DNA from: Klebsormidium nitens
Taxonomy: Eukaryota; Plantae; Klebsormidiophyceae
Direction of reading: 5' to 3'
Assembly (NCBI GenBank): GCA_000708835.1
Contig: DF237351.1
Coordinates: 20,813-84,812, forward strand
DNA length: 64,000 bases
Below are positions 2,688 through 59,490 of this stretch, one piece after another; position 1 is the stretch's first letter, and every line of letters starts with the position of its first letter. A program made the position numbers and the translations under genes. Below the pieces are notes generated by a model. The model saw only the letters and a list, made by a program, of their open reading frames with translations, was not told where the DNA came from and did no database searches.

Positions 2688-5600
2688 TTAGTGGTCAGAT
2701 TGTTTGCTTGCATCCATTCGGGCAAGAACTTCTCTTTGCAGCGGCGTGTCTGAGAAGATGGCTCGTATCAGACGTTGCACCTGCACATGCATTGGTTTAG
2801 GTCAGTGAGCCTCAACCGAAAGGTTGACGCCGTACAAGCAGTGGCGAAGAGCAGCGTGCAGACCTCTGCACGCTGCTCTCAGGTCGCACGAAGGGGAAAA
2901 ATCTTGCATAGACGATCCAGCGTTTTCCCGCAAAGGAAAAAGCATTTAAGCGGGACGGTCAGCCTCGAAGTTTGATTGAGATTTGAGTACGCTGCAGTGT
3001 TCTTTGAGTAGGTGTACAGTAAACGCACTCGCAAACCTGGGACGACAAACATGAAGCAATTGCAATTTGTCGGGATTAGGTTGAGTTCATCTTGAAACTT
3101 TCGGCCTTCGGGTCATTTTCAGATTTGACCGGATGTCCCATAGATCTTTTCCGATGACAGACGCTCACCTCCGGTGCACGAAAGCCGCACGCCGGCAAGT
3201 TGCCGGACTCCCACGCTGCGTTGATGTCCCGCAACGACATGTCCAGGAAATCTGACAGCAGAAGGAAGAGCGCTTCAGAACAAACATGCGAGCGTGTTTG
3301 ACTTCGGTGTCGGAACGCTGACACCGAGGGAGCGAAGTAGGCAACTGCACGCTGAGCGACAGAAGAGAAAGCCTTCAAGAAAGAAGCAAGGCGACTTTGC
3401 CTCTGCACGCGGTAAAACACGCAAAACTTGAGGCATCGCCGTGTCAATCTCAGTAGGCAGCAGGAGCACAGCTTTGGACTTGTGCCTTCCCCGAAGAGCC
3501 TCCTCGCTTTGGCATCAATGCACGAGGAAAAGCAGACCACGTCTTTCAAGCATCATCGGCGGTTCACGAAGTCGCAACGGCGGCAGAAAGTCGAAACACG
3601 GGAACCGAAAATTTGCCGTCCCATGCGGTTTTGGACTTCATGCTGAGAGTCTAGTGGACAAACAGCGAAATCACAACAGAGTGTCTTTGCGCAAGAGCAA
3701 AATGTTGGACCCGGCGGCGAATGGAATTACTGTAACGCGACCTATTAGCAATTTGAAGACGCTATTTTGCTGAACAAGTGCAGATATCGCAGATCAAACA
3801 CCGGGTCCAGTTTACGTCGTGATCTCGGTCGGAAGATTCGCCTTCTTTTTAGCGTGAGCCGGACAAGAACCCGCAGGCCAAAGCTGGTGACTTACCGATC
3901 AGCCGCAGCAGCTTTGGCCCCGTTGGCACAAGCCGTGACGCCGTTTCCGCTCTTCCAATCGTTTCCGCTCCGGAACCAGCAGGCGGACTCGTGAGGACGT
4001 CCGGAAGGCCCTCCAGGAGCGTCCGAAGGAGGTGGCGCAACTGCGCAATGGCACGTTACTTGTCAGGCTTCTTTGAAAGCCTGCCTTTGAGGGAAGTCGT
4101 ATATCTTGCGGGAGACGCGACAGCGCTTCAGTGGGTTGCTTACTGAAGAACACAAGCGGAGACGTAGTCTGTACTCCCACGTTCGTAGCATGATCCGCCA
4201 ATCTCGTGCAAAGAATCTATGAACTACTTCTCTCGACCAAAGTAGAGGCTTCTTCTCTCTTGACCGCCCAAGGCGTTAGTCACGACCGGGCATCAAACGC
4301 CGGCGCATCGCACCGCCCTCCTCTTGTTCCCGAAGAAATATACCGGAAGAATGAAATCTCCGATACAGGCCGGAAGGCAACATACAGAATGGAAGCAACT
4401 TCCCAGACCCGCAGAAGTTGAAACCCCCCGCAACCTGATCAGTCAAGAGCACATTTCCTCACCTGTTTTGTCACACTCACAAGCTCGAGAGAAGGGGAGA
4501 GAACTGACAACGGCGGGACTGGTAGAAAGCGGGAATCGACGTCAATGAGTTACCCAATGAAACCGAGCAGCGGGCCGCACCTGGGTGGTCTCCTCGACGG
4601 CGATATCGTCCAGCTGGAGCACCTCCGAGGCGACACGTGCCACGCACGCCTCCGCCAGTGACGTCATCATGTCGTGGAAGATGCCGCGGCTGAGGACGGG
4701 GCGCCAGATGGTCGCCAAGTGTCCCAGAACATGCAGCACCTGCGGAAGCGAAATATCTTTGAGCATCCCCTCGTTTATGTCTATCTAAAAGAAAGAAAGT
4801 GGAAGCAAGGTAACAATAACTGATTATCAGACTGGGAACCCTTTAAAGAGATGTATAAGCGTTCGCGCAACCAAAAGGTAGATCTTGTGTCTCGGGCAGC
4901 TTATGAGTCCACCCCACTGACGACAATAGCCCGAGTAGTTCGGCCACATAAGAAAACACACGTAACAACTGCTCTGGCGTCGCCAAACACATGGTACAGC
5001 CTTTCTGGAGCATCAAAGAAAAGTCACAACGGAGACTGTGGGGCTCTCCGCAAGATAGAACGCTCAAGCTATACCCCGTCTTCAGCTCTCTGAAACCCTT
5101 GGCAGATATTGCCAACCGCTTGCCTTCGTGCTAAATCTTGTGTCACGAGTCCCTCCCGCGAGTCGGGCAATTTGGACGGCGCGGAAAACTTTCACACTGC
5201 CCGACCCAGAACGGCTTCGAGCGCTGGTTCCACGGCGTCTCAGCGACCCGTTACCTCCTCGACGGCTCAGACACTATGTTTAGAAACCCTACGAACTTGC
5301 CATCCATCCTACTCCCGAAAACCAACGGGTCAATTTACAGTTGTAAATAAGACAGAAGTTCCCCACCTTCTTGATTGCTCGCTCGGCCCCCTTGAAGTTG
5401 ACCTCCTCGTCCGTGAACCGGAAGCCCTTGCCCTCGTCCAGCGCCCGCATCAGCTCGTCCCGCTGCTGACGTACTTGGCCGGACCGGGTGACGTCAGCGA
5501 GTTGCTCGAAGGCGGGGGCGAGGTCCGCGAGGGTGGATAGATCCCGCAGGGAGGGGGGCAGGGCGTTCTTGTACTGCGAGGAGAAATGTGAATTGTCGAT

Positions 5601-12300: not shown

Positions 12301-15070
12301 GATCTTGTGCAAAGAGTTCATCATCGACGCGTATCAGATCTTCAAGGCGCGCATGGTGGGCGCGGACGCGGTGCTCCTCATCGCGGCGGTCCTTCCTGAT
12401 GTGGACCTCATCTACATGTCCAAGATCGCAAAGTCCCTCGGAATGCAAGCCCTTTTAGAGGTCAGCTTCCCTGTCGCTTCTCTCCTTGTTCACGAGCGTC
12501 TGAAGGTGGGACCTTATAGCATGTTTGCATGTAAACAATGCGTCAGATAGTGATTTTCGCCCTTCCGAGTAAGCCAATTGCCGGTCGGTCCAGCATTTCA
12601 ACGTATGGCCGCGCATACTTCGACGAGGCTGGTCACTCCTTTGCGCTGATATTTGGAGGAAAGATTGGGAAGTCGGAAGGAAGTCTTTGCCGCACCCTGC
12701 AGCCGCTAATGGTGTTTTGCATCGTTTCTGGCAACAACTTATCTCGTGGCATTGGCGCTGTAATTTCACCTTGCTTTATCGCCTGTGACACTTTCAGTTA
12801 GATTTCTAGCTGTATTTTAAATAAATCTGATCAGGTCACGTATGTCTATCTTCGGGGGAACTCTCCACTTCGCTTCAGGCACTACGGGTTCGAGTAGTTG
12901 GTCACTTTGAAGTCTTCCCGCACTCCGTCCACCGTTGCTGCTGCATCCCAAAAGTCTGGCGAGTACAAGAAAAGGGCCTAACGTTTGGATAACATTGGGA
13001 ATGTGGCAGTCGCTTAAGGTGGTCTGTCGTTCGACCTCTTTGCATGACGGTATCGCGAGAGGGACAAAAGTGAAGCAAGATGGAGCGAAACGGAACCCAC
13101 TCAAGCGGATTCGGAACTAGATGGAGATTCGGATTGCAAGCATACACGCTTCGCCACGCTCTTGCTTCAAAATTACACGCTGGAAGGAAGTGGGCCACGT
13201 GTTCGGATCTACGGCGTGCCCATGATTGAAACGGGAAAGGATAGAGCAGAACGAAACAGAAATAAGCGGACTTGGAACAAAACGAGACCCTGTGAGAAAC
13301 TAACGCTCCGCTTCGCTTTTGCTCCAGGTTCACACGCTGGAAGAGATGGACCGGGTACTCGGAATCGACGGCGTGCAGATGATTGGGATCAACAACCGGG
13401 ATCTGAGTGAGCATTCAAGCCGCGCTTGTCCTCAATGTCCTGCCCTCTTGGAGAGGCAGGGTTTCCGAGTTACGTAGGTAGGGCGCAGGAGAAGACCTGA
13501 AATGATACCATTGGCAACTCCTCGGTGTAACAAACAAGTATCTCCATTTCCAAGTGCTTGAAAACGCGCTTCCATCGTCGACGTGCCGATTGGATTGATG
13601 AGTGCCTATTTACGTCCTTGAGCTTGTTGGCCAGTTCCAGTAAGGTTGTCAAGATGAGCGGATGCAAGAGCGCAATCTGTTCCGTCTGAAACCGAACCAA
13701 CGAGCGATCTAGCCGGTCTCATTGAGCCGGTCTGGTTTGATGGTCTTCACCAGCAATTGAAATGGGAGGTCAGGAATCCTTCCAACTTGTCGATCTTGCT
13801 GACGTCATGGGTGGTGCTGCGCCTATCTTCGCTGACGTCACCGGTTCGTCATTTCAAGGTACGTTCAAGACGGACATCCACAACACAGCGCGGCTGCTCG
13901 AGGGCGGCCGCGGCGAGCAGATCCGGGAGCGGAACATCCTAGTGAGTCCCGTTTCGCGCTGTAAAACATACTTCTGATGGGCTTTCCGAGTCGCGGTGTG
14001 AAAAGGCCCTGCTAGCTGCCCATCTCACGGTGTTGCTCTTTACACTTGAGCGAGTATGGGCTTGATGGGCTCTTGTATTGAGACGGGACACGTACCAGCG
14101 AGCCGCCACGTCGCATTTTCATACTTGGAGCAAACGCGGGCGTGATGGGTTGGGTGGGGACGGTGTGCAAGACTCGCCTGAGGGTTTGAGAAACCGAACA
14201 CGAAGGTCGCCGTTTATTAATGACCTGTTTGCCGGATTTACCTGGGAGCACTCAAAACGATAGCGACCTAGCTTGACCTTGAGACGCGCAAGCTGAATCT
14301 TCAATCAAAATAACGAACGAATTGAACAACTCAATTTTACTGAAGAATCACGACAAGAATTTGGGGCCAGATTGTTCCGGGAAGAATGAATCCTAGAGAG
14401 CCCCACTTCTTAGAGGGAGAAACCGGTGCCGGAGCAGCTCCGAACGCGCTCTGACAGCCAAGGAGTGCTTCAAGAGCTCTTGAGGAAGCTTGTCAAGAAA
14501 GTGGTTTTGCTCTTATTGCAGTTGGTGGGCGAGTCGGCGCTCGCAACTCCGGAGGACATCGCCATCGTCCAAAAGGCGGGAGTCGGAGCTGTGAGAGTTT
14601 TTACGCAGTCCCCGCACATCACGTTTGCCAGACTTGGCTGCCGTGTGTTGGCGGGGGGCCCTCAGAAGTTGTTCTTTGCGCGTGCTGGACATTAGGGGGC
14701 TGAGAAAAGGGCAGTCGGAGACAGACGCTTGTGAATTGTCTGCTTTCTGAAGAAGCGATGGTGTAGGGCCTTCGGTCGTATTGTTTCTGCCTTGCTTCGT
14801 ATCTCTTTTTTCACCCGGAGAAGTCCCGCAGTATGGTAGCCGTATCTGGATTCGGAGCGTTGCTAATTTCCAGCGTCTGATTCTTGGTGGAACTGGGCAG
14901 TGCTGAAGTACTTTCGTTTTGGTGAGGGAGTTGTGGACGAATCGCAATGACGGGGCTTTCTTTTCATGCAGGTCCTGGTTGGAGAGTCGTTGGTAAAACA
15001 AGCGAACCCTACGGAAGCCATTGCGGGATTGTTCGGAAAGGATATCTCTCGGAAACAAGTTGAGCAGTGA
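9373..15070 (+). CDS. IGPS (trpC): Indole-3-glycerol phosphate synthase, plastid-targeted, about 448 aa, 10 exons
   Basis: Exons 9373-9585, 10153-10497, 10872-11045, 11351-11425, 11614-11658, 12296-12460, 13328-13406, 13859-13941, 14522-14590 and 14972-15070 (1347 nt). Motifs [58 protein letters not shown] and VLVGESLVK. Ser-rich transit-peptide-like N-terminus. Confidence 0.95.
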
Positions 15071-16010
15071 GTGTATCGTCGAACTTGCTGTTGGTTCTCG
15101 AGGGACACGGAAACGGATACATGTAATGCCTTCATTTGCTACAGGCTTTTAAATAGAAGCTTTTGCTCTTCGAAGTTCTGCAGTCGACCTTCTACTTACC
15201 CGCGGTGGCATCGACTGCTTTCATGCAGATGTTGCATGAACTGTCTTCTGAGCTTCAATATGACCTCGTGGTTTCGGTGCATCAGATTCCGGAACTCAGC
15301 ACACTCCTTGCTTCATGATACGCGCGGCCAACAATTGACACGTCAGCATCACTTCTGCACATCTTGGTGCACTCGTAAATTGCCACATCGAAGCCTGATC
15401 AGAAATTGACTGTGGATGCATTCAAGGTTGGAAACTCTCCTCGAAGCAACTGCACTTATTGATCGTCAAATAATCGTTATTTGAAGGCTAACGTTTGCAT
15501 GATGCTAGATAACACATGGCGGAGCTCGACTTTCGTCATGGCATGTTTATATACATGGACATTCATGATCCGGCCAGCTTTATGGCGCCGCTGGTTGACC
15601 CGACTCGATCACTTGTTATAAGCATATAAATGGGCGCGAAGCTCTAATCTTCGACTCACATTGGCGCGTCGGCCGTCGTATTGAGCGACTAGGTACTCGA
15701 AGGAGGTGATTTTGGTACGTAGCATTTCGTGTCAGAGTCATGAGCCTAGCGCAGGCCGGATATAGCTTCCGCATCCTCGGATCGTATTCTTCTCGTATCA
15801 GTGTGACTAAAGAATTTGGACCGTCTTAGCTAATAGTGAAAGGCAAGCCTCCATATAATCAAAGATCTACTCATCACCTTGCTGATTCTTGTAAGGGTCG
15901 GACAGAGTCTTGATTCGTATCCCAGTCGTTTCGGAGAACACTTTCTCACAAGAGCAGCGGACTGAGTCAATTCGATCACGGAAGAATTCAAATCGGGATA
16001 TACTGGAGAG

Positions 16011-16884: not shown

Positions 16885-17032
16885 CGAAACTCCCTATTGC
16901 GCACGGATTTTTCAACTTTTTGCCTCTAGACTCGCAGGTTCAGGTTGCTTGTGACGTAAAGACGACCATCGATCTGCCCGTCCCTTTCTTCCTTCTCCTC
17001 CACCGATCTGCCTCGCCCTTCTCTTTGCCACC

Positions 17033-18001: not shown

Positions 18002-19762
18002 ACTCTGCCGCCGGGGCTTGCGACTGGACGGCGCCGGGTGTTACCCCGACGCGATCCTTCCCTACTTCTTCGTGCACCCACTTGATGGAAACAAGCTTCT
18101 GAGCTGCCCTGGCCTGAGCGCCTTTTCAAGAAGATGCGGTGCAAAAAAGCATTATCTTCGGATCAACTGAGAAACTGAGTAATTGTTCAGCTCGATGAAC
18201 GGCGGGCCTTTTCTGATGATTGGTCTGAGGGTTGTATTTCTTTAGTCACCTGCGGTCTTCTGTAGTCTGCCTTCATTGTGCAGTGCGCTGCATGACGGCG
18301 GGCGGCGGCCGCCTTGATCCGCTCCGAGGGTTCGGTCACGTCACGGTTGCGTCTCGAGAATCCCAAGCACTTACTTCCGACCGCCACGTGCCGCCTTCGC
18401 AGGAGTTTAGCGCCCATGAAGTGAATCTGACGTCATGCTCTAGTTGCTGGTGTGGGAGGAATCGTCAGCTTCTTATACGTGGCGAGCAGCGAAGCGGAAT
18501 GCAATGTGGGGAAAGAGGAGGAAGAAGGAAGAACTTCATGATCGAGAATTGGAAGGGGGGAGATCTTGATTCCCCCTGTACATATCTCAGCTAAAGGAAT
18601 CCAATCAATGCTAGCGATAAGAAGGAAGCACGGCGGCCTTTCTTGCGGGCGGCACTTGGAGTAGAGAACCTCGAAGCAGGGCGGCAAGTTCAGTTCACCT
18701 TCATGGGAGCAAAAGATCAGAACCCTTGCACAAGGAGGACTTGCACAAAAGCATTAAAGGCTGTCTGACTTGGGTGCGCTGGTCGCTGACGTCAGCCGCT
18801 AGATGACGTCTTGACTCCAACCAGGTTCAAACCAGTCTGCGCCAGCGCCTGTTTACAAAGAAGCGCTAGCTGCTTCTCGGAACCACAAGTTTCTTTCATC
18901 CAATTGGTCTCAACCACAGCCGCATTCAGCCTTGCTTAGCTAAAACCCACCGAGGGCTTAGCTACAGAACAAACGGGGCTAACCATACGTCTGAATCAAT
19001 GGGGTTGTTCCCGCACTCAGAGTTGCGCCCAATTGGGCTCCCCTCGTTTCTCTACTCGACAAGCCCTGGGGTGTTGCAGGCATTGGACTCAGCATCCAAT
19101 GCTGCCCGGTTGGATCAGCCCCCACCAAATGTTGGACCGTCCGAGCCGCATGCAACCTCACAGAGCACTAGATCTGCGATTGGCCAGGTGAAAGCAACTC
19201 ATAAACACGCCGTAAAGATAGGCGCAGATTGGTGTTTGGACCCAAAGAGGACATTCGGCTGACTTCTTGAAGGGTCCACCCTCGCATGGAAAAGCAATGC
19301 TGCCAACTAGCCTGTAGCTCACGATGATTCTGCACCCCATTCTGATCATGTTCTTGGCATCCTGCTAAGCTCGGTGGAAGGGCAAGACTGTTATGTTTAA
19401 GGCACATTCGTGAGGTTTCGGAAGTGCATTTGGCATTTGTTTAGGAGCTGACTTGAAAGAGAGGAGATGTCCTTTTCTTTCGATTGTCTTGATTGAAGAC
19501 TGCAAAGTCAGATTCTTGTTCCATTGTCCTGTTTGGCTGTGCCACGAACAGGTTCTCTCAACGAGAGCAATGCAAGTGAAGTGAGGTCAGATCTCACTGC
19601 ATACTAAGCTTCATTGCCACCAAGATACCACTGCAACCCCCACTGATGCCACTACATCATTAGCTTCGAATAAGCATCGACCGCAAAGGGTGAGCGCAAA
19701 AGTCAAATCGTTTAACAAGCAAGCTGATGTCAGCTCAATTCTTGTTGCAGTCGTCAAAGTTC

Positions 19763-22700
19763 ATGATTCCGCAAATGGCGGAGGCTCAGGTACCCAAGAA
19801 GAAGCTGGAACTTTATTCCACTGGGTACTACGCCGCTGCGTTCGCCGGGGGGGCGCTCGCCTGTGGGCCCACGCACTGGGGAGTCACCCCCCTGTAAGTT
19901 GAACTATCCACAATTGGTTGGTCCTACTTTGTACCCTCAATAGCTTTCAATGAGGTTTTCCATTCGAGGGCTTGGAATACATGTAGCAGGCTATTGAAAA
20001 AGCCTTCACTCAGGGCACTTGTCACACTCGATACATCGATTAAATGCTGACCCTGGAACCCTAGGTTCTCCTTGCGGCCCTCAGATCTCATGTTCGGTTA
20101 CTGCAGAGCCATTCGTCAATCGGTGGAATGAAGGTCAGCGGCTGACATTGACAAAGCTCGCAGAATCTATCTTTGTCAGGGAATTTCACCTTGGCAGCTA
20201 TGGAAGACTGCATTTCTAAGACCCTTACAATGTCAGCAATACATGCAATTGGGTGTAAAATGAACCACATATGTACCGGTTGTGGCAATAGAGCTTGCTT
20301 TCTAACCTAATGCCAGGGCGTCAAGGTAGTGTCCGATTACTGGTCCAAGAAGACGGAAGCGCAACAAAAAGCGGACAATGTGTTCCAAGCTAACCAAACC
20401 CTGTACCCTACTAAGAATCATTCAATTGACTCCAAGAAACTCTGCAGCAACCCGCATCGAGGGGACACAAACACTAGAATCCTCCATTCAAAACCTAGAC
20501 CTCGTTGATGCTTTCCTTTCAGGGACGTGGTAAAGTGCAACATGCAGATTGACCCCAAAAAGTACCGAACCATTCCATCGAGCTTTGCAATCACGTGGCG
20601 CGAGGAGGGCATGCGAGGCTTCCTCAAAGGCCACTTCCCCACCTTCATCGGCTACTCCTTTCAGGTATGATCTTGGCAGGCACGACGATGCATTTCAATC
20701 CATTTTCCAGGGTTAAGCGTCAGGAAACGTATTGTCCAATCTCTAAAGAAGGGTGGGGTTAGCTAGAGGGTCTGGTGTGAACGGGTGCGGAGCACTCAAG
20801 CTCTGGGTTTAGCTTTCAAACTGGTCGTTGTTGCCCTTTGTGGCGCTGGTTTTCATCCAATTTGAGAGGTACTCCTTAATCCTTATGCACTCGAGGTTTC
20901 GGGTCTCCATTCGAAGATTCATGTTCTGGGGCTATACTAAGGGCACTGGAGGCTGTGATTTTGTCAGTGGTCACTTCTCTTAGTCACGGGCTACTGTTTT
21001 CAAGGTGTTCCGTTGTTTTCTTGGGGGCTTAGCTCCTTCATTGTGTCTCTACGGTCCCAATGGTCATGAGTTCCTCGCCAGCCTTCATCTTGTGGAGTCC
21101 TTTTGTGTGCTGAAGGTCTAAATATCCAGGACAGAGAATCCAAGTTAAGACTTCTAACATGGGCGACTTGATCTGGTTCAGTGCACGATGCCGTAACACC
21201 TGAAAGGCGTCAAGAAAGGCCGAGCCAATCGTCTGAAGGGCTGAAGTGCTTCGATTGCCAGTGTTTGTGGAGTTGTGTACTAAAATGGAAACTTTGACGG
21301 CGGAGGCTACTCAGCTATTCGGCTCGACAACCCGACTCTGCAGACGGGGCGATATCTCGTGGATACTTTCTACGCGTGCCCTTTACTCTTGAAGCAAGTG
21401 TGAGCTCCAGCCGGGTTTTCCCGGCCTCGGCTTTCCTGCTTTCAAAGATCCGCAGCGACTTGCTTTTGGTGGAGGCTCCATTCGTTTTCATTGGTCTCTC
21501 TAAATTACTCGCCCCCCGGGTTGACGTTTGGCCTTCATTGGTACGAAATCAGTCAATCTGCCGCGCTGAGATTCCAAGTCAGTGATCATGTTCTTCCTCT
21601 TCTCACCCTGACCTAGTCACTGTAACCGCACCCGGTTTCTTCAAAGAAGCAGGGACTGCGCTTTTTGAAGTCTGAAGGAAGGATTGGGTTGAACTGAGTT
21701 CGGGCCTCCGTTACGGGGCTGCAAACGGGGGCTGCAAACGTTGAGGCCTTGTTTGGGCGCAGGGCGCGTTCAAGTACGGTGGCTACGAGGTGTTCAAGAA
21801 GTACTACTCCGACCTGGCGGGGCCTGAAAACGCGGTCAAGTACCAGCAGCTCATTTTCGCCCTTGGCAGGTGAGCGCTCCCGCGAACCCGTCTTGGCTGA
21901 CGTGGCTGCTTACATCAGCATCCATGTCAGAACTTTGTTAGGGCTTGTCGTGGTGAGACTTCCAGTCGAGGCGGTCGGAGAAGGCGAAGCAAGAGTTGAA
22001 CGAGCGTCTGTGAGCGGATCTTTACAATGCGACAGGCCGTCAAAATCATTGGCCTAGTCTCTTGGCTGAGACAATCTAGAGCAATTTGATAGGACCAGAA
22101 CCGACCATCGGACGTCGTACCAGCTAGCTCGTGGTGCAGTACGTATTGAGTTCATATCAGATGGTCGACCATGGTGCAAAGTGCAGCGGTTTGCTCGTAC
22201 TCGAGCGCCCCAGCATTGGCAGATTACAAGCTTCTGCGACAGACGATATTAGTAATGTCCCAGCAGTTGAAGGGAGCTTTGATTGGATCGACAGTGACAT
22301 CTGTACGAGTCGTCAGAGCCCCTTTCTTTCTCAGTACGTGCATTCTGATTGGAGGCTTGGAAATGTGACGTCAGTTGAATCGAATGCATAGCAGTTGACG
22401 TCATTCTCCGTCCATACAGTGCATCTGCGGAGGTTTTTGCGGACATCGCGTTGTGTCCGTTCGAGGCGGTCAAAGTGCGCGTGCAGACGCAGCCGGGTTA
22501 CGGCTTCGGGTTAGTGGACGGGTTACCAAAGTACGTGGCGGAAGATGGTTGGGCGGGGCTGTATAAGGGGATTGTGCCCTTGTGGGGCCGGCAGATCCCT
22601 TACACGGGTGAGCGTCCCTGGCTTTGCTGACGTAGGCTGACGCGATGCATGACAAAAAGGATCAACGGTCCCGAAGACTACACGACAGAGTCACCTAGTA

Positions 22701-24799: not shown

Positions 24800-25274
24800 T
24801 TAGAGTTGCCATCTACCATACCCAGTAACCACGTGCGCCTCCATGGTCGTAGCTTGTAGCCCGGTTAGCAACGTCCTCAATTCCTCATCTTCCACTCAAA
24901 GATAATAAGGCTCTCCCATCCCAATCAGAGCCCATCATGCGAAAGACATGGTGAAAACGACTGAGCTAAGGAGTCTGCGCCCCAGGAAAGTTTGCAACTC
25001 CTTTACGCAACATTCGCGCTCGAAGAACCCCCACGAGAGGAGGACGACCCCATACCTCGCTGTTGCCACCGCTCCCAGCATGACGTCAGCAGCCACATCC
25101 GTCCGAGAAGGTCCTCACCCCCGAGCGCTCTAGCTCGTTCTTGGGGAACACTGCAAAGTGGCGCTTGCAGTCCCGCCTGCAGTGGCTGACGAAGACATCA
25201 CATGCGCAGCTAGACTGAGTGACGCAGACATGGTGAACGGAGGAGCAAAACTCAATGCGGCATAGCTTCTGCAA
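24800..25274 (-). pseudogene. Decayed TIR-domain gene
   Basis: DVFVSHCRRDCKRHFAVFPKNELERSGVRTFSD (from 25199), a frameshift near 25095, then AADVMLGAVATARYGVVLLSWGFFERECCVKELQTFLGR. In-frame stops at 24937 and 24898. This matches the TIR bA-aA-bB and aB-bC-aC pattern including the conserved xCxxEL glutamate. Confidence 0.75.
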
Positions 25275-33500: not shown

Positions 33501-36500
33501 CATCGAAAGCAACATCTTGACCCCGGGTTTAAAGGGCCCGAGACTTGGGCTGGCAGAATCCTGACAGTGGGGCCCGATCGGAGAAAAGGGAAGGAGAGGG
33601 GCGGGGAGGACCACAAATGCTGTGGAGCCGCCAGCGGATGATCCAAAGTGCACTGACTAGAGCGCACCATTTCGACCCCAGCATTCGACAGAAAACGTGC
33701 TCTCGCAAGAGCGAGATTATTCGGAAGACAGTCTTAGAAAAGTCAAATTCTAGTGTTCCTATTCCACCAACCAAACCATGATTGACCCAACTCCGCCTTT
33801 TCACCTCAGGGAAGATGAAAAGGTGCGATTCCCACGCCCATTTGCAGCCGTGAAAATCAGAGCAGACACGCCCACAGCTTTCATTTCAGAGCAGTTGGTA
33901 GCTGTGCAACGCATCAAGAAAGAGAGCAGGGAGGAAGAAAGAAACAAGGGCGCAATCTGGCACCAAGGCCGGTCAGAGAGGGACAGAGGAGAATGTAGAC
34001 GAATGGAGGAAACGACCGGAGCTTGGCTTTGAGCTCTCTCAAATAGGACGATCACAGCACACGGGTAATTGGTGAGCCCGGACCACAGCAAAAGGGCGCA
34101 CCTCTAGTTTTCCTTGGAAGAGCGCAGCCACCTGTTCCACGAGGACCCCCAGGTGGAAGTCGATCTGCTCTAGCGTCAGGTGCCCCGCCTCAATCTTGCT
34201 GAAGTCCTGAAGAAACGAGCAGAGCGAAAGCGGAGTCAAAAAGGGCTTCTTTAGGTACTGGAGATTGAGGAGGACGTCTACTTTAGGGACTGGAGCAAAC
34301 ACAGTGGGTGATAGAAGGACGTGACAGCTAGAGGCCGGCGGCGTTCGGCAGTAAGTGCACAGGGGAGCTTCAACAAGTGACTAGTTAGATTTCCTGCGCA
34401 GCTTTTGAAGAGATCTAGGAGCAAAGGACAATCAGCAAGCCGAGCGACAACCTGAAAGCGTCGTATGTTCTTCTGGTTTGAATACCATAGGACAGGCACT
34501 AAAGCGTTTCCAGGGGTTCAACTCGAGCCCAAACGCTTTTTGTATAAATACTATAGACGGCTTCAAAGCTGGCGTTCCCAGGGTTGCAACTGGAGCCCAG
34601 AGGAATTTTGTAAAACTAATCGAGCGAGCTTGAAAGATGGTCTTACCAAGATGTCATTTATGATTGTTAGCAGGGACTCCGCGCTGCCCTGCATCGCGCG
34701 GACGTACCGGCCCTGCTCTGACGACAGCGGGGTCAGCCGCAGCAGGTCCAGCATCCCAAGCACACCTGGGGAGGAAGAGCGTAGACATTTGCGAAGAGCC
34801 TCGAACTCGTGTAGCAGAGCAACCGAAGGACAGACGTAAGGACGAGGAGGGCAAAAGCTTAGCGTTTCAGTCTTGGGACCTCGTAAGTAGCGTCTTTTCA
34901 GTTGCTTGAGCAATTTGCAAGGTGGCTCGTAGTCGCAAGCTATGTCAGGAAAGTTGGTCAGTCAAAAGCTGTGCAGAGCTTGAACTAGACCGAAAACCAG
35001 CGCTTTCTTTTCTTGACTGCAGACTTAAGGGGCGAACGTGAGATGCATGTGGTGCAAACGACTTTGTAGTGAAACGGAGGCCTTCTCCTCGCTCCGGCTG
35101 TGGCGACCAAAGCGGACTCGATTCCCAGAACTCGACGGTTCCCGGCAAGCCCACCAGGCTGGATCTATACCACATGCATCCACGTGGCAGCGACAACAAT
35201 ATTTGACCGGACTCTTTGGCTTTTATGCTGGGTACATGATCTCTTTAGAAATCTCCTCAGGACTTTCAGCACGTCTTGGACGCTTCTCGCTTTCAATCTA
35301 TCGTGGTCTGATGTCGGGAAACGCAAACACGAGTATAGAGTCAGCTGCGACTTCGATCCACTGAGCGGCCTCCGGAGCTCATGTTCGACAGCTGCGACCT
35401 GAAGCGCTTTTCTGGAACTCAAAGATCCACCCCTCGCAACTTTAACAACTTCGGGAGATGCGGAATATAACGACTGCGCACACTCAAGAAGGGATGAGCC
35501 ACTCAGGTATATTCACCTGTGAGTGGCGTCCTGAGCTCGTGGCTCATCATCGCCAGGAACTGCGACTTGGCGCGGTCCGCCGCCTCGATCGCGTCCCTCG
35601 CGTCCCGCTCCGCCGTGACGTCATCGAACAGCCACACGCGGCCGTGCGTCATGCGCTGCTTCTCGGGGACAAGGCTCTCGATGCCGAGTGACATCAGCTG
35701 GTTGGACGCGCCTCCCACCGGGTATGACCGGACTCGTAACACTTGGCGCGGGTTTTTAAGGACCCAATCGGACTCGATGATTTCGTTCGGGTTCCTGCAT
35801 AAGGCATTAGCAAGTCAGGACGTTACGAAGAGCACATGTCCCTACACTTTGCGTGGGTGCCTGAAGAGTGGGTGCCTGAAGAAGCTGATGAATCTCACCG
35901 GGTTCGCACCCTTCAAGAACAGAGAGTCAGATTCTTCTGAGGACCAGGACACCTCCCTCCCATTCATCATTTCATCGACGAAAATTCGATCTTAAAGAAC
36001 CTATTCGGTGTGCTGAAGCAAGCAAGAGTTTTGTGAAACGCAGCAGTGCTGTTGTAAGTATTCGGTTGCGATGAAAGCGGTCAGGTGCTTTCCACTGAAA
36101 GGCAGAAGCTAGCATAAATCCACTCGGGTAGTGTTCTCTCCGGGTTGATAATGCGAGCCCAAGACTTGGAAATAGATTACGAACTTCACGCAGCAAGGTT
36201 CTCACGCAACTAGAAAGCAAGCAAGCAAGCAAGCAAGCAAGGAAGGAGGTTGCACGAACGACACATACCCAGCAACCGCGTTGAACCAACGGTAGACCTC
36301 CGCTCTCATGTCGCTCCTCGCCGCCAGCTCATGCATTGTCGCCGCCACTTTCACCGGATCCAGCTCCCCAAAGGTGGGCAAGTTAAGCAGCTCCGCCGCA
36401 GCCGGGTTAACCAAACACGGCCCTAACCCGTCGTCGATGAACACCACACCCTGCGGCATCCGCTTCAGGATCGCGTCGAACCGCCGGCTCAGCCGTTCCG

Positions 36501-38915
36501 TGCTCATCGCTTGCACCCTACTAGTCAGGAACGCGGGCAACGCCTGCACTGTGTCTGCCATTATGCTCGCCGCGTTTCCGGGAACCGAGTCCGCGCGAAC
36601 CCACATCGCGTAGCACAGCCCCTCGCATCCGGTTGCGGCAAATTGCAGCGCGAGGAGCTTCTGGGGCCGGGCCCCGAGCGCGGCCGTGAGCATGCTTGGC
36701 AGCAGGAGCTTCTCGGTGTCGACGACTTCGCCGGTGGCCGCGTCTAAAACGCCCTTGCTCAGGCGAACCGGGACGGTTACCAAGCCCTCGGGGACGCAGA
36801 GAACTGTCTCGGCAAGGCGGGTGGGCCGCTGCAGAGGGAAGGCGGGGAAAGAGGCGGTGAGTTTGAGTGGGATATTCGCGTTTTCTGTCTTAGGGTAAGA
36901 GGAACGTATGACTCCTGTAGGGTGAACTCTGCATTTAGCTGCTGCACGGTATCAAAGATGCACTTGATCAGAATGTCAAAGGTTACGGGATCTGCTGCAG
37001 TGAGCAAGGAAGGAAAGAGCAGTGGTCAAGACGTCAGTTCCGATTCCTAGCACGCTTACTTTGCAGATCCTTGGCAACGCTAAAACCTTGGTCTACATCC
37101 TTGTTCTGCTCGGATTGTTGTTGCAATGTCCTACCCAAACGCCTTGAACCTGCTGCCCACTCAAAGGAAAACCAGGTCACAGGGACCTTGAGCACAACAG
37201 CCGAGACCGTTTCTGAACAACTCGAGAAACCGAACCTACCTGCAGAATCGCTGCAATTGTGAGGTCCGCTTGCAGCGCCCGTGCCACGATCTTGAGCACC
37301 GACTGAGGCACGTGCATCTGGTTGTCGCTACTCTCGCCTGCGTCCAGCGCCGCACGTCGCCCGGTTGGCGTCCCCCCTACACTTCCCCCCCTGCCAGAGT
37401 TTCCTTCCCAAGCGCCCGGGGGGAGCGCACCGGGCGCGAGCGTAGTGCGCGCAAACTCCTGACTTAGCGGGGCGCTTGATGTGGAGGGGGTCGAGCTTCC
37501 ACTGACGCTGACCCCCCTGGGCGTTGAGTTGAAGCTTGTCGAGGGGGGGGAGGGGTTCTCTCGAAATGTCCAGGGGGGTGTGGCTCGGCTGGAGGGGGGT
37601 GCGGGAATCAAGGACGGAGGAAAAGCAGCCGGTTTAAAGATGGGGACCTCCCACTTTTCCAGCCGCCCCAGTCCGGAATGGGGGGGTGCGGCAGCATTTG
37701 GGTCGCCAGCCCCCTGGCGGCGGGACAGCATCTGCTCGCCCCACGGTTTGAACCCCCAGGAGGGGTCGGCAGGTTCGGGTTTACCGCTTGGGGGGCTGGG
37801 AGCAAGGAAGGGGGGTAAAGCAGCCTGGGGGCCAAACGGTTGTGGTGGCGACAGACCGCTCTGGAGGCTGGACGTTGGGAGCAGGTACGCAGGCATCGGG
37901 GGGGTGCTGCTGGCTGGTAAAACCAACCCCTGGACCGGACTGAAAGCGCCGGCGAACCCATTCCCTGGGATCGACCTCTGCGGTTGCAGGGCTTGGGGGA
38001 TGACTGCATCAGGCCTCCGTTCTAGCAGGCTCCCCCCCTTTAAATTCTTCGCTCCGCCGATATTTTGTTGGTCCGTCTCTGATGCTTCTCGGTTCCCCCC
38101 GCTCAGCAGGTCCGCATTCTCCGCTCCCCGAAGCCCAGCCTCTAGCGCACCTTCTGGCACTCCCGCACTTGCATCGACAGCGAGCATGATCTGCCAGACC
38201 CCCCGGCACTCTTGTTGCAGCTCGGCTGTTCTTGACGAGGGGCCCGGCGAAACCATCCCCAAACAGCCCCCCTGACGTCACCAGCGGTGCAGCGTATTAG
38301 CGCCTTGCTTGTTCGCGCTGGATGCCTGAACCAAGAATGTCTCACGTTGATCTCGTCAATTGGGAACAAGGTTGTAGCCAGCTCACGTTCCTGCACATAG
38401 CAGGTCCGAATCTGTGTGGACGCCTCAACAAGGTAATCTGGTGATGGATGCGCAAGCGTCCAAATGCTCGTGCCAGTTTGTTTGTCTAAGGCATGACCAC
38501 TTAAGCTGTGCATGACCACCTCGCAGTATGTTGTACAGCCACTGGATGCTGTTCACTGTCTCTTCAAGGACTACTTGAGCTTCAACGTGGCAGCAAGCCA
38601 ATGCATCTGTTCAATTCTTGCTTGCTCCTAAAAGTAAGCAAAACATACTCATGGCAGTACCCGCCATCATGTTTAGATGGTCCGGGGTTTCAAAGGACAG
38701 CCGCTTTCAGAAACTTCACTTGAAAAGAATGCCGACTAGCCGTCTTCAAATTCATTGAATCGTTGAAACTAACCTGGCAACGTCACTATGATGCAGCAAG
38801 CAAATGACCAGGACTTTACGAGCCGCTCAGAGGCCATGAACTCCATGGATCGGCTCTCTTTTCCAGAAGCAGAAGGTTCATTCATGCTTACTAGAGGTTC
38901 CCAGCTTTGCTTCAT
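30556..38915 (-). CDS. Soluble hybrid sensor histidine kinase (GAF-like / PAS / HisKA / HATPase_c / REC), about 1300-1430 aa; 5' exons tentative
   Basis: Firm exons: 38271-37240, 36828-36269, 35794-35517, 34765-34647, 34206-34102, 33013-32782 and 32174-30556. Tentative in-phase upstream exons: 38548-38346 and 38915-38774. H-box [16 protein letters not shown]-box [17 protein letters not shown]1 VTDTGIG, G2 [10 protein letters not shown]. Receiver VLVAEDN / LMDLQMP / YLTKP. Confidence 0.9.
36215..36241. repeat. (AAGC)6 microsatellite in the kinase intron
   Basis: aagcaagcaagcaagcaagcaagcaag read directly from the sequence. Confidence 0.9.
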
Positions 38916-45756: not shown

Positions 45757-48700
45757 ATGGGTGTCCTCTCAGTCAGCAGAGCTGGGCCGCATGGCTGCCT
45801 CAGCGCCACTCCCAATTATGTAATTGAAAGCCAGTCAGCTGGGAGGCGGCCACGACAGCCAGTAGCCAATAAGTATTCTGCAGGTCTGTGCTTTCCCTGC
45901 TCTTTCCTTGGCAGCATTTCCTGCATTCAGCAATCACATAAAACTCATAATAAAATCTCGAGTCATGATTTCAAAGTATGCGCTGAGAGGCGAGGGGGTG
46001 GCTCACAGGGGCCTAGGAAAGACTCCGGCGGGGGGCGGCCTGGTGGAAGTCAAGGGGGGAGGGGCGGGGGGAGAGGTTCCTCCTCGGAAAGGTCCGGTCA
46101 GGCAGGGGGGAGGAGAAGTGGGGGTTCAGGAAGGGGGGGTGAGAGAAGTGGCGATGGGAGGGGTGGTAAGGGCAGGGGCAAGGGGAGGACGGAAGGGGAG
46201 GCCAAGACGGTGGCGCCAAAGGAGGGGGGCCTCAGGATCAAGTCCGAGAGCGTGATTCAGGAAGAGGTAAGGAGCATAGTACGCCGACTTTGAGGGACTA
46301 AGTCCGATCATGTTTAGTGTTCTATGCTCCACATTGGCGCATCTTTGAACTTCTGCATGCGACTGTATTCTTCAAGCTGGTGGCTTTGCTATTTGCTATT
46401 TTCAAGCAATGGAAGGGTGGTGTACTGGTTAAAAGGTCCGATGTTTTAGCGCAAGAAGCACCAATGAGAAAGGCTGTTATCTGCCACCAATTTGGAGTGG
46501 CTTATGTTTCTGTGGTGATTGAGATTCTCCCCCCGAGAGCTTCTCCTTTCGAAAGAAATGAGCAAATTCTTGCCAATCTCTAGAATCGCTGGTTTCATAA
46601 AGTAAGGACTTGAGAAACCAAATAGCAATTTCTCCAATAGTTGGCCGTGACATTGTTTTTTGCTCAGATTACGAGGCACATCAGGCTGACGGTCATAAGC
46701 ATCACACTATGGGGCTTTTGTTCAGACATCCTTTTGGAGTACTTGTTAAAAAGCAGTATCGATGATGGCTCATTTACAAAGTCTAATTGTGTACACAGTG
46801 TTCAGAAGTCTCAAGGAAAGCCGTTTTGCCACCAACGTCCTTTCAGTGAAGTAGGCGTAGAGTCCGACGACATTGTGTGTACCAGGTCTTAGCTTTTATG
46901 TACAGTACGTTGAACTGAGCACACTGTTCAGATTGTTTCCAGAGACTAGAAGTCATTGCAGAAGCTCTAACATCTCTGGGACAACTTGACTGTTGCCTTC
47001 AGGAGGCGGCTGGTCTGCTACGCATCAGTCAGTTGGAAAAAGTTCACTACTTCTCGCTCTGGTGCTTATGTTAGACATGGTGTTGCGGGTTCGTTTGGGA
47101 ATGTTTGCTCAGGACTCACAGGAAGAGTGAACAAGTCTATTTACCAGAGGCACTTTCCATTCTCAAGGAAAAGTAAAACGTGTCCAACTTAGTGCTACAG
47201 TGCATGGTTGAAAGGGCACAGCTTTCAGTTGTACCCTTCTGCAGGAACCGGCAGGCACCCCCCAGTGGGACACGTTTGTGAGCAGCCTGTCCGGCGTTTG
47301 GGAGGGCATGGCCGGCGCGTTCTCTCCAATCACCGGCAAAATGGAGCCCCTCGCTCTAGACGAGGAAAACAGCTACCTCTTCGACGCGCTCTCGCACTGC
47401 TTCGTCGAGGGGGGGGTCAGCGTCCCAGCCAAAACAGGGGGGGAGACTGCAAACGGCGTGCGGCGGCAGGTGTTCTGGACGGTCGGCAATGCGGCGGAAA
47501 AGAACGAGGGGCAGTACCAGGACGACGTCGTCGATGACGTGGATGTTGACGTGGAGGATGACGTCAGCGGGCTGGCGGGGGAGCGAGCGAAGCTGGAGCG
47601 GGCGCTGGCGGCCTCGGAGGGGGCGAGCGGTGAGGTGCGAAAGGAGGGGGGCGAAACGAAAGAGGGGGGCGATCTGGAGGAGGGGGACGAACTAGACTGG
47701 GAGGAATTTGAGGAGGGCGACTTCGAGGAGGGGGACGAGTTTGAGGAGGACGATGATGACGACATGGAGGAGTCGCAGGTGGAGGATGACGTCATGGGGC
47801 GCGAGCCGGGGCTGATCTTCTTCGAGGTGAGGGTGGCAGTGAGCCCGCACCGCGTGTGTCTTATGTTGTTTTTGCACGTTACTGTTTCGAACACTCCTTA
47901 GGAATCGCTGACATTTCCGTTCATGCTTGGTTGGAAAAGCCGAGTCCGACACTTCAGCCGGCTTCTAATTGGCAGCTGCAAACGACGGAGGTATGGCGAC
48001 AGCCGAAGATTGACACGAATCGTTCAAAAAGCGCACGCTGTTTGGACGTTTGTCAGAGTGATCACCAGAATGGGTTGGGGTCGCACCGGCAGAACATTGG
48101 CGAATCTTTCTAAGAAGAAAGCCCGGTACCGAAACGGCTTTTGTCAGTAGAAACGAAAAAGAAAGGAAACGTTTGTCTATGCAACACTCGACTTCGGGAG
48201 GCCGGACTTGACAGTTTCAACAAACTCGAAGTTTTGGTCCTTTCAGCAGCGAAAATCGTTCAGACAGCTGGACGGGGCACAGTCTTATGAGGTAGAGAGG
48301 CGAGAGCAGTGCGGATCGCAATCACCAGGGAGAAGCAGCCTTCCCATTTTTGCCTGCAGGGCGGATGGCATGCACAGGTGCTTCGATGTTTTCTGGCAAA
48401 GTTCGTCAGAACGTAACACAACACTTCTTGCCATCAGAAAGCTGTATCTGGTACTTGAAGTCGAGGGCGCTTGTTGCATTACTCTTGGAGGACAATTCAC
48501 ATCTACGGGAACCAATTGATTGTCATATAAGCACCCTGCAACACCGGTGCCGTGGAAGGAAAAGGCCGTTAGGCGGAAGTAAGTGCTTATATTTCGCTTT
48601 GCGCCTGCAGGACGGCTCATACTCGCGGGGGCCGCTGGACCTGCTGAACAACGTGCAAGTAGATGACGTGGATCCAGATTCCGTGGCGGATGACGACCCC

Positions 48701-58300: not shown

Positions 58301-59490
58301 ATTGAGTACATTTCACCTCACGATGCAATTGCGATGTCTATCTTGAAGCAGCCATTCTTGCCAAGAAACCACCAACAACTCAGAGCGAAACCTGCGCAGC
58401 AACTGTATGCTGCTTTACGATCGCAACAACTTTTGATGGCGGCACGATGCCAAAGCTGGTAATGGTGAAACAACTTTGAAACAACGTCAGCGAAGGATGA
58501 AAAAGCCACTTTCAAACCCTCAGGTTGACGTCACCCCTCACCCGGCACTGTGCTGAGGTCAATTGCGTCCACGTCCACCCCGATGCTCTCAAGATACCAC
58601 ACCATCCTCTGCTGCACCTCTAGGGGGTCCTCAAAAAGCGCCGACCCTTTCTCCAGCATCTCCGGCACAAACTGCTCACTATAGCCTGCCACCCCGGCCG
58701 CCAGCGCCGTCTTCGTCCCCGGTCTCGCCGCCACTAGTTGCGCCAGATCAGCAGTGTCGATGATGGTCCGCTTCGATGCCCGGAGGTCCCTCGCAAACTG
58801 CCCGCCGTACGTGCCCCCGCCCCTAGTTACGTCCTCCCGATGCTGGCCGCGCATGGCGGCGACGTTCCGTTTGTCATCTTCCCAGTAATCCAGCCCGTAG
58901 CCCTGCTCCTCCACATTGTCGCCGTAATTGATGCGCATCCTCTTCTCCCACGGCGCTATCCCGTTGTGGTCCCCGTCCATCTCGCTCTTCTTCTTCCCCT
59001 CGTTCCCTGCGCCTTTTGCCTTTTTCGGCTTCCCCCAGGGGGTGCTCCGCCCATTGCGATCGTACCCCCGGTCCCGAAGCTGCTCCATCTCCTTCAACAG
59101 CCGCTTTGCCTTCAGGTTCTTATACTTGTCCTCCATCTTCAGAGACTGGCACACAATCCTGTTACCCCTTGCTCTCTTTTCTTGCACCAACTCGCGACCA
59201 CTTACCATGAAGCTGCTCGAAACGGGCAAATTCACCAGCCTCATAGCAAAGCTCTTCAGTGCTCCATCAGCACTACACGTGACTGATCGCAATGCTCGGT
59301 GCTGTGCTCTGAAAGGCTTTCCGGTTCCGACCAATCTCCGTTCTGCAACATTCGCCGTTTGAGCAGGAAGCAGGCGCACACCCATGAAGCTTGATGCTGG
59401 CATCTTTTCCAACAACTTTGGGGCTTGCCTACGGATGGAGCATACCCCAGAGGGCCGGACCAAGAGCCCTTGGCGGCTTAGCGCCTCCAT
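55348..59490 (-). CDS. mTERF: mTERF-family organellar protein, about 819 aa, 5 exons
   Basis: Exons 59490-58542, 58104-57896, 57502-57263, 56724-55907 and 55591-55348 (2460 nt). Repeats KVDYLVSLGL, RWPQLLRLSLRKNIIPVIKYL, YPQILYHSFELTLQPRVLFL, PKLEFL and FPNFLCYSLPNRIAVRH. Confidence 0.92.

Follow-up and report, generated by a model that had tools for sequence, protein, structure and literature searches.

Over-representation and conservation of the palindrome TGACGTCA in and around genes of the alga Klebsormidium nitens

The palindrome TGACGTCA is the CRE or plant C-box, the site of ATF/CREB and TGA-type bZIP dimers. Within a 64-kb stretch of the Klebsormidium nitens genome (the window), 17 exact copies of this word are present where about 1 is expected, a density of approximately 1 per 3.8 kb. 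Why should a word of this kind be repeated through exons, introns and intergenic DNA, and what might maintain it there? A preliminary description of this DNA had counted at least 17 copies; the number is exactly 17, and each is found at the position claimed for it. The copies, together with one variant, are given below, with strand where assigned and with sequences from relatives designated L.

4659..4666, exonic copy in a minus-strand ZW10-type gene, register ATG-ACG-TCA (M-T-S); exon block conserved, 8-mer exact in L001, L002 and L003
5489..5496, exonic copy in the ZW10-type gene, GAC-GTC (D-V); exact in L001 and L003, lost in distant L002
7383..7398, 16-bp perfect palindrome CCGCTGACGTCAGCGG in the Zw10_middle exon (Pfam match), register CTG-ACG-TCA (L-T-S)
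13800..13807, distal copy in intron 13407-13858 of a plus-strand gene (RNA joints and loose ends), with the acceptor 51 nt further on; exact in L001
13833..13840, proximal copy in the same intron, its end 18 nt short of the acceptor; GCTGAC puts an A at -23, the branch-point position; exon start 13859 from RNA contigs
18428..18435, intergenic/promoter copy with divergent genes on either side; the transcript of the carrier gene starts about 90-220 bp downstream of it
18785..18811, 12-bp palindrome GCTGACGTCAGC with near-copy TGACGTCT 17 nt downstream, in the 5' UTR (exon 1)
19725..19732, plus strand, variant TGATGTCA within GCTGATGTCAGC; its end lies 18 nt short of the acceptor of intron 19188-19750 (joint supported by an RNA loose end)
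22366..22373, distal copy in an intron whose acceptor, at 22419, follows 46 nt later; a Mito_carr domain begins at 22421
22396..22403, proximal copy in the same intron, its end 16 nt short of the acceptor, a branch-point position
25081..25088, copy of ambiguous class; short open frames on both strands, no domain match
32429..32436, probably intronic copy between two HATPase_c-encoding exons of a minus-strand histidine-kinase gene (Pfam)
35616..35623, exonic copy shortly upstream of the H-box in the histidine-kinase gene, reading GAT-GAC-GTC-ACG (D-D-V-T); HisKA match in the same open frame
38273..38280, copy in 5' UTR, intron or promoter, just upstream of minus-strand ORF 37177-38262; the copy's TGA is in frame with the ORF
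47535..47566, exonic cluster TGACGTGG-N4-TGACGTGG-N4-TGACGTCA with a 12-nt period, which codes for D-V repeats and includes the exact copy at 47559
47787..47794, exonic copy in the same coding exon as 47559, GAT-GAC-GTC-ATG (D-D-V-M); exact in L004 and L006
50146..50153, exonic copy, GTG-ACG-TCA (V-T-S); exact in L006, changed in L004
58526..58533, copy that provides ORF 58531-59490 with its stop codon, TGA on the minus strand

Among all 8-mers of the window, TGACGTCA ranks first in over-representation by a wide margin. Dinucleotide shuffles of the window contained a mean of 0.83 copies and a maximum of 4, and Markov models of orders 0 to 6, with the copies masked, predicted 0.75-1.7 copies against the 17 observed, so that enrichment persists under fifth- and sixth-order nulls. 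An unmasked order-6 model expects 24.7 copies against 34 observed, both strands being counted; this apparent vanishing of the enrichment under unmasked order-5 or order-6 models is a circular result, nearly every TGACGTC 7-mer being part of TGACGTCA itself. In coding sequence, shuffles that preserved protein and codon usage led us to expect 0.57 copies where 6 are present (0 of 5000 shuffles reached 6), and shuffles that additionally preserved every dinucleotide led us to expect 0.66 where 7 are present (0 of 2000). The earlier contention that codon bias alone fails to explain the word is thus borne out.

The enrichment is specific to the exact word. TGACGTCA is the sole outlier among the 256 palindromic 8-mers, its one-mismatch variants are hardly enriched (about 1.7-fold), and a putative partner motif, TGTCCAAG, with one mismatch allowed, showed no enrichment in the window (59 sites versus 61 expected). 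A general palindrome-generating process was considered and rejected: the other 255 palindromic 8-mers sum to 271 occurrences versus 234 expected. No enrichment was found in the unrelated DNA that was scanned. This negative control comprised 593 kb of bacterial DNA from a metagenome scan, namely loci of kinases that match the histidine-kinase exon at 35-45% identity and are not orthologues, and contained 1 copy versus 6.7 expected; an olive and a fungus-like contig held 0 copies, but fewer than 0.2 were expected there. The excess amounts to 10-20 times across this alga and two relatives, and is approximately 13-fold in the two related algae. TGACGTCA is a real signal.

At least seven of the copies lie in coding exons, four in introns, one in a promoter (18428) and one in a 5' UTR (18787). 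The seven coding copies occupy two registers, as had been claimed: D-V (GAC-GTC) at 5489, 35616, 47559 and 47787, and T-S (ACG-TCA) at 4659, 7387 and 50146. Nearly all copies fall in transcribed DNA. Only those at 18428 and 18787 lie near a transcript start, which supports the earlier argument that promoter clustering, with 1-2 of 17 copies so placed, does not explain the distribution. No RNA contig covers 18101-18518 and transcripts start at 18519-18651, placing the 18428 copy in untranscribed DNA; exon 1 of the carrier gene reaches 19187, and every frame is closed ahead of the ATG. Domain searches, which were run exon by exon, found no TIR domain around any copy, and the earlier placing of one copy in a TIR pseudogene was not confirmed. 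Searches for known RNA families and tRNAs returned none in the window.

Furthermore, the positions of the copies are conserved. At orthologous positions the whole site is retained in 7 of 9 cases in a close relative, R1 (p = 0.003-0.011 versus control 8-mers), and in 4 of 6 in a distant relative, R2 (p = 0.009-0.015). The check proposed earlier, conservation of synonymous sites, gave a positive result: third-codon positions inside copies are 94% conserved in R1 versus 73% elsewhere (p = 0.025), and in R2 the values are 78% and 60%. At the 7383-7398 site, GGCCCGCTGACGTCAGC is identical in all four genomes across five synonymous third positions, in an exon with 63% nucleotide identity to L002. 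The promoter copy at 18428 is kept in L007 inside a 75%-identical block, and the copy at 47559 is exact in distant L004 and lost in close L006. The best explanation is that TGACGTCA is a short element which selection maintains and which algae of the Klebsormidium type have in common; composition, codon usage and repeats do not account for it. The enrichment is confined neither to this window nor to branch points, since DNA of the relatives is enriched and most copies lie elsewhere.

The sequences immediately surrounding the copies are also biased. The extended consensus is G-[C/A]-TGACGTCA-[G/T]-C, with C at position +/-2 in 21 of 34 half-sites (p = 1e-5) and the same pattern in relatives; the flank bias noted previously, GCTGACGTCA at 9 of 34 half-sites, was reproduced, as were the 16-bp palindrome at 7383-7398 and the 12-bp palindrome at 18785-18796. 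Upstream and downstream flank C (12 of 14 versus 7 of 14) do not differ significantly. Such symmetric flanks are compatible with a reader of two-fold symmetry. Around the copies, to a distance of 30 nt, TGACG half-sites show a 4-fold enrichment, and paired copies recur 30-33 bp apart. Beyond +/-2 the flanks are unrelated: no TIRs, TSDs or similarity outside the core were found. A repeat or transposon origin was rejected, as no repeat family in the window carries copies. The suggestion that copies are relics of insertion targets is not supported either, given the same lack of flank similarity and the conservation of exonic copies in frame. All six CpG-transition variants described earlier are present, each with a GC flank on at least one side. 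Their interpretation as methylated, decaying copies was not supported: there are just 6 such variants versus 2.1 expected, the 8129 variant (the sole one with an outgroup) is identical in a relative, and the 19725 variant is a presumably working one at a branch-point position.

Intronic copies are concentrated at the 3' ends of introns. Five of seven are found no more than 60 nt from the 3' end of introns that measure about 500 nt (p = 4e-4), and a proximal copy ends 13-18 nt ahead of the acceptor of two K. nitens introns and of the R1 orthologue of the 22419 intron. The L007 orthologue of this intron is otherwise unalignable, and in it GCTGACGTCA ends 13 nt before the acceptor, where conservation resumes. 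Matches to yUnAy whose A stands 18-40 nt ahead of an acceptor in use occur at 13833, 22396, the 19725 variant and L007 4168. The branch-point sequence is CURAY, for example CTGAC, and GCTGAC is an optimal CURAY site; in the proximal copies the adenosine of TGAC precedes the acceptor by 18-23 nt, and the flank C gives CTGAC. These proximal copies occupy candidate branch-point positions, with the TGAC half at branch-point distance. Of the copies proposed previously as branch points, 13833 and 22396 are supported by lying 18 and 16 nt before an RNA- or domain-supported acceptor, and 38273 is ambiguous in class. The GTCA half, by contrast, falls outside any known branch-site requirement, most copies are non-intronic, and most introns use other CURAY variants, with TGAC used at only about 6 of 26 inferred acceptors.

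Comparison with relatives showed that the counterpart of 13833 in L001 is GCTGACGCCA, in which the branch-point half is retained and the palindrome broken, and that the counterpart of the 19725 variant carries GCTGAC-TTTG at the same place. Where relatives differ, the TGAC half of intronic copies is always retained. The 22366/22396 pair folds into a 13-bp stem that is lengthened by G-U pairs available to the sense strand only, and the degenerate partner in L007, GTGACGTT, still pairs. Folding z-scores of paired copies are -1.3 to -2.2, and wobble-compatible variants (4 versus 7) have no sense-strand bias; on these grounds, and because the change at 13833 in L001 is uncompensated, an RNA hairpin joining paired copies was rejected.

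Bisulfite contigs cover a part of these sites. In the piece 13588-13816 all 49 C's were converted, including both C's of the copy at 13800, which is consequently not 5mC-methylated on the top strand; every CpG in the stretch around this copy is unmethylated. The unmethylated copy, although a single one read from one bisulfite contig, argues against a motif-specific cytosine methyltransferase, one form of the sequence-specific methyltransferase that had been put forward. In the piece 18783-19373, 26 of 28 CpGs are methylated, as counted for the piece as a whole. The intron 3'-end clustering and the unmethylated copy at 13800 are new observations here.

What, then, keeps TGACGTCA in place? The reading that we favour, tentatively and at somewhat less than even confidence, is that a dimeric protein of bZIP type would recognise the word in duplex DNA, and that weak selection would keep it in and around genes. 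Such a reader is proposed because TGACGTCA is the CRE/C-box palindrome; both the protein and what its binding achieves are things that we infer. It may be a chromatin-organising bZIP, as the preliminary description suggested, or one acting within genes in some other way. A minority of copies, such as 18428, may be ordinary promoter elements, and the majority, within transcription units, could be many individually weak sites that form a density-type signal. Retention would be highest where a part of the word is under a constraint of its own: in exons by the D-V and T-S codon pairs, and in introns by the branch point, the TGAC half presumably doubling as the CURAY branch site. A bZIP reader is favoured by the palindromic core with its ACGT centre, the symmetric flanks, the half-site clusters and the conserved, untranscribed promoter copy, as well as by the enrichment under every null, the conservation of whole sites and of their third-codon positions, and the lack of sense-strand bias among wobble variants. 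Against it stand the paucity of copies near transcript starts, unlike ordinary bZIP cis-elements, and the near-restriction of the excess to the exact word, sites of transcription factors being typically more degenerate. The fixed distance from acceptors is an RNA-processing coordinate, and location in transcribed DNA is predicted equally by an RNA-level function. CG methylation usually blocks CRE binding. That gene-body CG methylation is present in this alga (PMC5890265) is thus a further point against a bZIP reader.

The RNA-level function itself, which we regard as unlikely, would have self-complementary copies pair within one pre-mRNA, or be bound as RNA, to influence splicing and, at intron ends, present or sequester the branch point. 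The predominance of copies in transcribed DNA, the placement of intronic copies near acceptors, in R1 also, and the stem at 22366/22396 with its L007 partner are what it predicts, but the promoter copy is conserved though untranscribed, folding is weak, the 13833 change in L001 is uncompensated, many exonic copies have no nearby partner, and neither the wobble variants nor the flanks show significant strand asymmetry. It is less probable again that a HIP1-like mutational or repair drive, in which sequence-specific modification with mismatch-repair bias, or biased gene conversion, regenerates the exact word, accounts for sites that are singly functionless. The sharpness of the 8-mer over its neighbours, its presence in every compartment and its lineage-wide enrichment with gain and loss (L001 9428, L004 6196) suit such a drive. 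However, the same positions outlast control words over deep divergence, including in the distant relative, the copy at 13800 lacks 5mC, other palindromes are not enriched, and transition neighbours are not depleted (6 versus 2.1), as a T:G repair drive predicts them to be.

A methylation-linked gene-body reader appears decidedly doubtful. It would be either a bZIP protein preferring methylated CRE or a bound factor keeping its site unmethylated, and would link the CG methylation of gene bodies with transcription or with protection against silencing. Such methylation exists in this alga (PMC5890265), TGACGTCA is enriched where CpGs are methylated although it holds a CpG at its centre, and the at most 2 unmethylated CpGs in 18783-19373 could be the motif and its neighbouring near-copy; against this, the sole readable copy (13800) is unmethylated within a wholly unmethylated stretch, and the case is otherwise purely inferential. 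Finally, it is very improbable that branch-point signal (CTGAC) with codon or amino-acid bias, or relics of repeats or transposon targets, explain everything. Three intron ends do use the word or its variant as a CURAY site, and GACGTC does arise from D-V-rich exons, but TGAC serves a minority of acceptors, the exonic, promoter and UTR copies are left over, the coding shuffles expect only 0.6-0.7 of the 6-7 copies seen, and no repeat family or flank similarity is found.

A bZIP-read element may be set beside several known systems. With CRE/C-box sites it shares the 8-bp core, two-fold symmetric flanks, clusters with TGACG half-sites and one conserved promoter-proximal copy (18428); it differs in that the algal copies lie mostly deep in genes, including coding exons, at high density and with a sharper exact-word preference. 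The S. pombe M26/CRE meiotic recombination hotspot, ATGACGT, is a DNA site that is active inside coding sequence and is bound by a bZIP heterodimer, Atf1-Pcr1. Its core word is the same, but hotspot motifs tend to vanish by conversion, whereas the algal copies are conserved and enriched. Chi (GCTGGTGG) and DUS/USS resemble the algal word in density (one per few kb), in being tolerated inside genes and in being density-type signals under weak selection; they are bacterial, Chi is non-palindromic and the others are tied to transformation, and no recombination or uptake role is indicated for the algal word.

We know of no cognate methyltransferase for TGACGTCA in the alga. Its closest statistical counterpart is HIP1 (GCGATCGC), the highly iterated palindrome of cyanobacteria (PMC4390886, PMC13756078). 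Both are exact 8-bp palindromes with a central CG-containing core, over-represented within coding regions whatever the gene and conserved between related genomes, and the function of HIP1 has long been unclear. The analogy drawn in the preliminary description therefore stands as regards statistical behaviour: the algal word is iterated through exons, introns, UTR and promoter, overrides codon choice and is conserved. It differs in lying in a eukaryotic nuclear genome with spliceosomal introns (RNA joints), in its lower fold enrichment, in having one copy without 5mC and in the coincidence of some copies with candidate branch points. We found no paper describing the TGACGTCA excess in this alga; codon-overriding iterated exact palindromes are known from cyanobacteria, and our literature search found none for a eukaryotic nuclear genome. 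Here the best-known bZIP site occurs in gene bodies that are methylated, in an alga that stands near the land plants, and its excess is old enough to be common to a relative whose synonymous sites approach saturation. Should a reader protein exist, the word would represent a new layer of gene-body information and a DNA-level constraint on synonymous sites and branch-point choice, with bearing, in streptophyte algae, on codon models, the discovery of motifs and the design of genes. As a speculation that we rate as somewhat unlikely, TGACGTCA may be a eukaryotic counterpart of HIP1- and Chi-type genome words: a palindrome at roughly 1-2 copies per gene across an algal lineage, serving as a gene-body mark that is read by a dimeric, possibly methylation-sensitive factor and wired into pre-mRNA processing as a branch site at intron ends.

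The 8-bp palindrome TGACGTCA, a CRE/C-box bZIP site, is present in 17 copies in the 64-kb window, all where the preliminary description placed them, and ranks first among all 8-mers by excess, with a wide margin (z ~20 under a second-order model); the runners-up are extensions of TGACGTCA itself. One hundred dinucleotide-preserving shuffles yielded a mean of 0.83 copies and a maximum of 4; these and all other figures derive from one window and ~80 kb of relatives' DNA, and their power is modest. The preliminary description had allowed that the enrichment might disappear under a high-order Markov or a dicodon-preserving null, and it persists under masked Markov models and under two coding shuffles. 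With the 17 copies masked, every Markov order from 0 to 6 predicts only 0.75-1.7 copies. Across ~5,000 confidently coding codons, comprising Pfam-supported ORFs and synteny blocks with a third-position substitution peak, synonymous-codon shuffling within each segment gave 0.57 copies expected versus 6 observed (none of 5000 replicates reached 6), and a stricter shuffle that also kept all dinucleotides gave 0.66 versus 7 (0 of 2000). An unmasked order-6 model expects 24.7 occurrences versus 34 observed, both strands counted; its apparent absorption of the excess was rejected as circular, since 34 of the 41 TGACGTC 7-mers are the motif's own.

The hexamer GACGTC occurs 34 times, half of them between T and A, indicating that the unit is the 8-mer. 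Beyond it, 21 of the 34 half-sites carry C at position +/-2 (p = 1e-5) and 23 carry G or T at position +1, and no similarity among the copies was detected past +/-2. Also recovered, as described earlier, were the extended half-site GCTGACGTCA (9 of 34 half-sites), two longer palindromes of 16 bp (7383-7398) and 12 bp (18785-18796), and the six transition variants. No repeat family in the window carries copies. Enrichment does not extend to palindromic 8-mers as a class: the remaining 255 total 271 observed versus 234 expected, and the G-box and other palindromes with an ACGT core stay at background level in the window. Two GC-rich palindromes, GCGGCCGC (7 versus 1.2) and GCCGCGGC (6 versus 1.2), are likewise over-represented across the window, which may be an Ala/Gly codon effect.

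Gene structure at 13400-19399 was defined by aligning RNA contigs and placing their loose ends in the window, and coding copies were assigned by Pfam and synteny. Copies, named by their first base, are located as follows.

4659, 7387 and 50146: coding exons, T-S register (4659 and 7387 in the minus-strand ZW10-type gene)
5489, 35616, 47559 and 47787: coding exons, D-V register (5489 in the ZW10-type gene, 35616 in the minus-strand histidine-kinase gene)
13407-13858, plus strand: intron, from RNA contigs, containing copies 13800 and 13833
18101-18518: RNA-free gap separating the phosphate-carrier gene from a divergent minus-strand gene; copy 18428, being uncovered by RNA contigs, is promoter or intergenic
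18519-18651: transcript starts of the mitochondrial phosphate-carrier gene, from RNA contigs, with a 5' UTR exon to 19187, which places copy 18787 in the 5' UTR, and an intron to 19750
22366 and 22396: intronic, in an intron ending at 22419
32429: probably intronic, in the hybrid histidine-kinase gene
58526: stop codon of a minus-strand ORF
25081 and 38273: further exact copies

The seven copies assigned to coding exons stand in two codon registers, D-V and T-S, the only two that escape a TGA stop; no TIR domain was found around any copy, nor the TIR pseudogene in which one copy had earlier been placed. Copy density is 0.46/kb in coding DNA versus 0.20/kb elsewhere in the window. The hybrid histidine-kinase gene (30556-38262, minus strand) encodes PAS, HisKA, HATPase_c and receiver domains, with HisKA and HATPase_c both divided between exons and ~333 open-frame codons without a domain match ahead of the second HATPase_c part. 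At 47535-47775 lies an acidic coding stretch rich in D/E/G, with imperfect direct repeats of 15-33 nt, in which TGACGTGG, TGACGTGG and TGACGTCA follow in 12-nt steps and encode D-V repeats; in the distant relative, the counterpart of this stretch carries a pair of exact copies spaced 30 bp.

Syntenic DNA of three relatives was obtained by exon-by-exon protein searches and contig look-ups: a close relative from one Logan assembly (R1; exon identity ~81-86%), a second close relative (L003), and a distant relative from JGI metagenome contigs (R2; the ZW10 exon is 63% identical at the nucleotide level, and third-position identity is 0.60). TGACGTCA is enriched 13-fold in both R1 (11 versus 0.86) and R2 (7 versus 0.52), and a 593-kb set of unrelated metagenome DNA shows no enrichment (1 versus 6.7 expected). 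Where orthologous positions align, R1 has kept the exact 8-mer at 7 of 9 (p = 0.003-0.011) and R2 at 4 of 6 (p = 0.009-0.015), compared with 28-35% and 17-19% survival, respectively, of random 8-mers in the same aligned blocks. Within copies, third-codon positions show 94% conservation in R1, versus 73% elsewhere (p = 0.025), and 78% versus 60% in R2 (p = 0.09). At site 7387 all four genomes share the same seventeen bases, five synonymous third positions among them. Turnover also occurs: certain copies exist solely in a relative, one of them amounting to a Gly to Asp change. Extra copies without a window counterpart lie at 3925 and 4490 of L007 (close relative) and at 138 and 16033 of L004 (distant relative); one is mid-intron with an AG 10 nt later, another falls 57 nt inside the next intron, and one sits within a Ty3/gypsy-like retroelement with protease/RT genes (L004 1-2600). 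The promoter block 18357-18536, between divergent genes, is 75% identical to L007 20-210 and contains GCGCCCATGAA, a TGACGTCA copy and, downstream, ACGTCAGCTT; neighbouring intergenic DNA is unalignable.

Intronic copies are non-randomly placed: 5 of 7 lie within the final 60 nt of ~500-nt introns (p = 4e-4), and 2 of 16 gaps between copies are <=35 bp (p = 0.009). Both window introns with exact copies have two, spaced 30-33 bp, the proximal copy ending 16-18 nt upstream of the acceptor. The A of its (C/T)TGAC, at 21-23 nt, occupies what is by sequence the textbook branch-point position, in agreement with the earlier suggestion for 13833 and 22396. A third intron has the variant GCTGATGTCAGC and a fourth has ATGACG at the same offset. 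The R1 orthologue of the intron ending at 22419 is unalignable, yet GCTGACGTCA ends 13 nt ahead of its acceptor; the other two introns in R1 retain GCTGAC, not the full palindrome. Branch points generally are ordinary CURAY, and only ~6 of 26 inferred acceptors make use of TGAC; the branch site therefore accounts for the placement of intronic copies, not for the GTCA half or the exonic majority.

Run X21 differs from the window almost solely by C>T (406) and G>A (438) changes, which identifies it as a bisulfite library; it dates from 2018 and fits the K. nitens methylome paper, and methylation was read per piece from the difference count relative to C or G content. In piece 13588-13816 all 49 C's are converted, including both in copy 13800, which lacks 5mC as do all surrounding CpGs; a methyltransferase that always places 5mC on TGACGTCA, one form of the sequence-specific enzyme proposed earlier, is therefore unlikely. 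Pieces 15709-16508 (34 of 35 CpGs methylated) and 18783-19373, spanning the 5' UTR copy 18787 (26 of 28), agree with published gene-body CG methylation in K. nitens (PMC5890265). Neighbouring expressed genes contrast sharply (13400-14600 versus 18783-19373): CpGs are essentially unmethylated in the strongly expressed gene at 13.4-15.1 kb, and the carrier gene is ~93% CG-methylated from inside its 5' UTR exon on. The region 15200-17000, which holds no TGACGTCA copies, resembles a repeat or transposon fragment carrying methylation, RNA-silent at 15.2-16.4 kb (including piece 15709-16508) and, at 16.4-17.0 kb, with 3-5 times higher bisulfite depth and one RNA contig with loose ends on both sides.

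We tentatively favour the reading of TGACGTCA as a putative bZIP-type DNA site under weak, density-type selection. The symmetric flanks, the clustering of copies with half-sites, the conserved copy 18428 in untranscribed promoter DNA and the absence of sense-strand bias among wobble-compatible variants (4 versus 7) all point to a dimer reading duplex DNA. An RNA pairing or splicing element would suit the transcription of almost every copy, the fixed distance of intronic copies to acceptors and the 13-bp stem of one copy pair, lengthened by G-U pairs that only the sense strand allows, but folding z-scores are weak and the sole informative substitution is uncompensated, and we consider it unlikely. 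Less likely still is a HIP1-like mutational drive that itself generates the palindrome, and less likely again a reader linked to gene-body methylation, a special case of the bZIP-type site. Under the favoured bZIP-type reading, copies would persist where overlapping constraint slows their decay, which in exons would be codon pairs and in introns the branch site.

Full-text literature searches found no paper connecting TGACGTCA with Klebsormidium, no description of intragenic CRE palindromes of this kind and no iterated palindrome described for a eukaryote. The signal itself is real, robust and lineage-wide, is apparently undescribed so far, and has its earlier proposed analogue in HIP1, the highly iterated palindrome of cyanobacteria.
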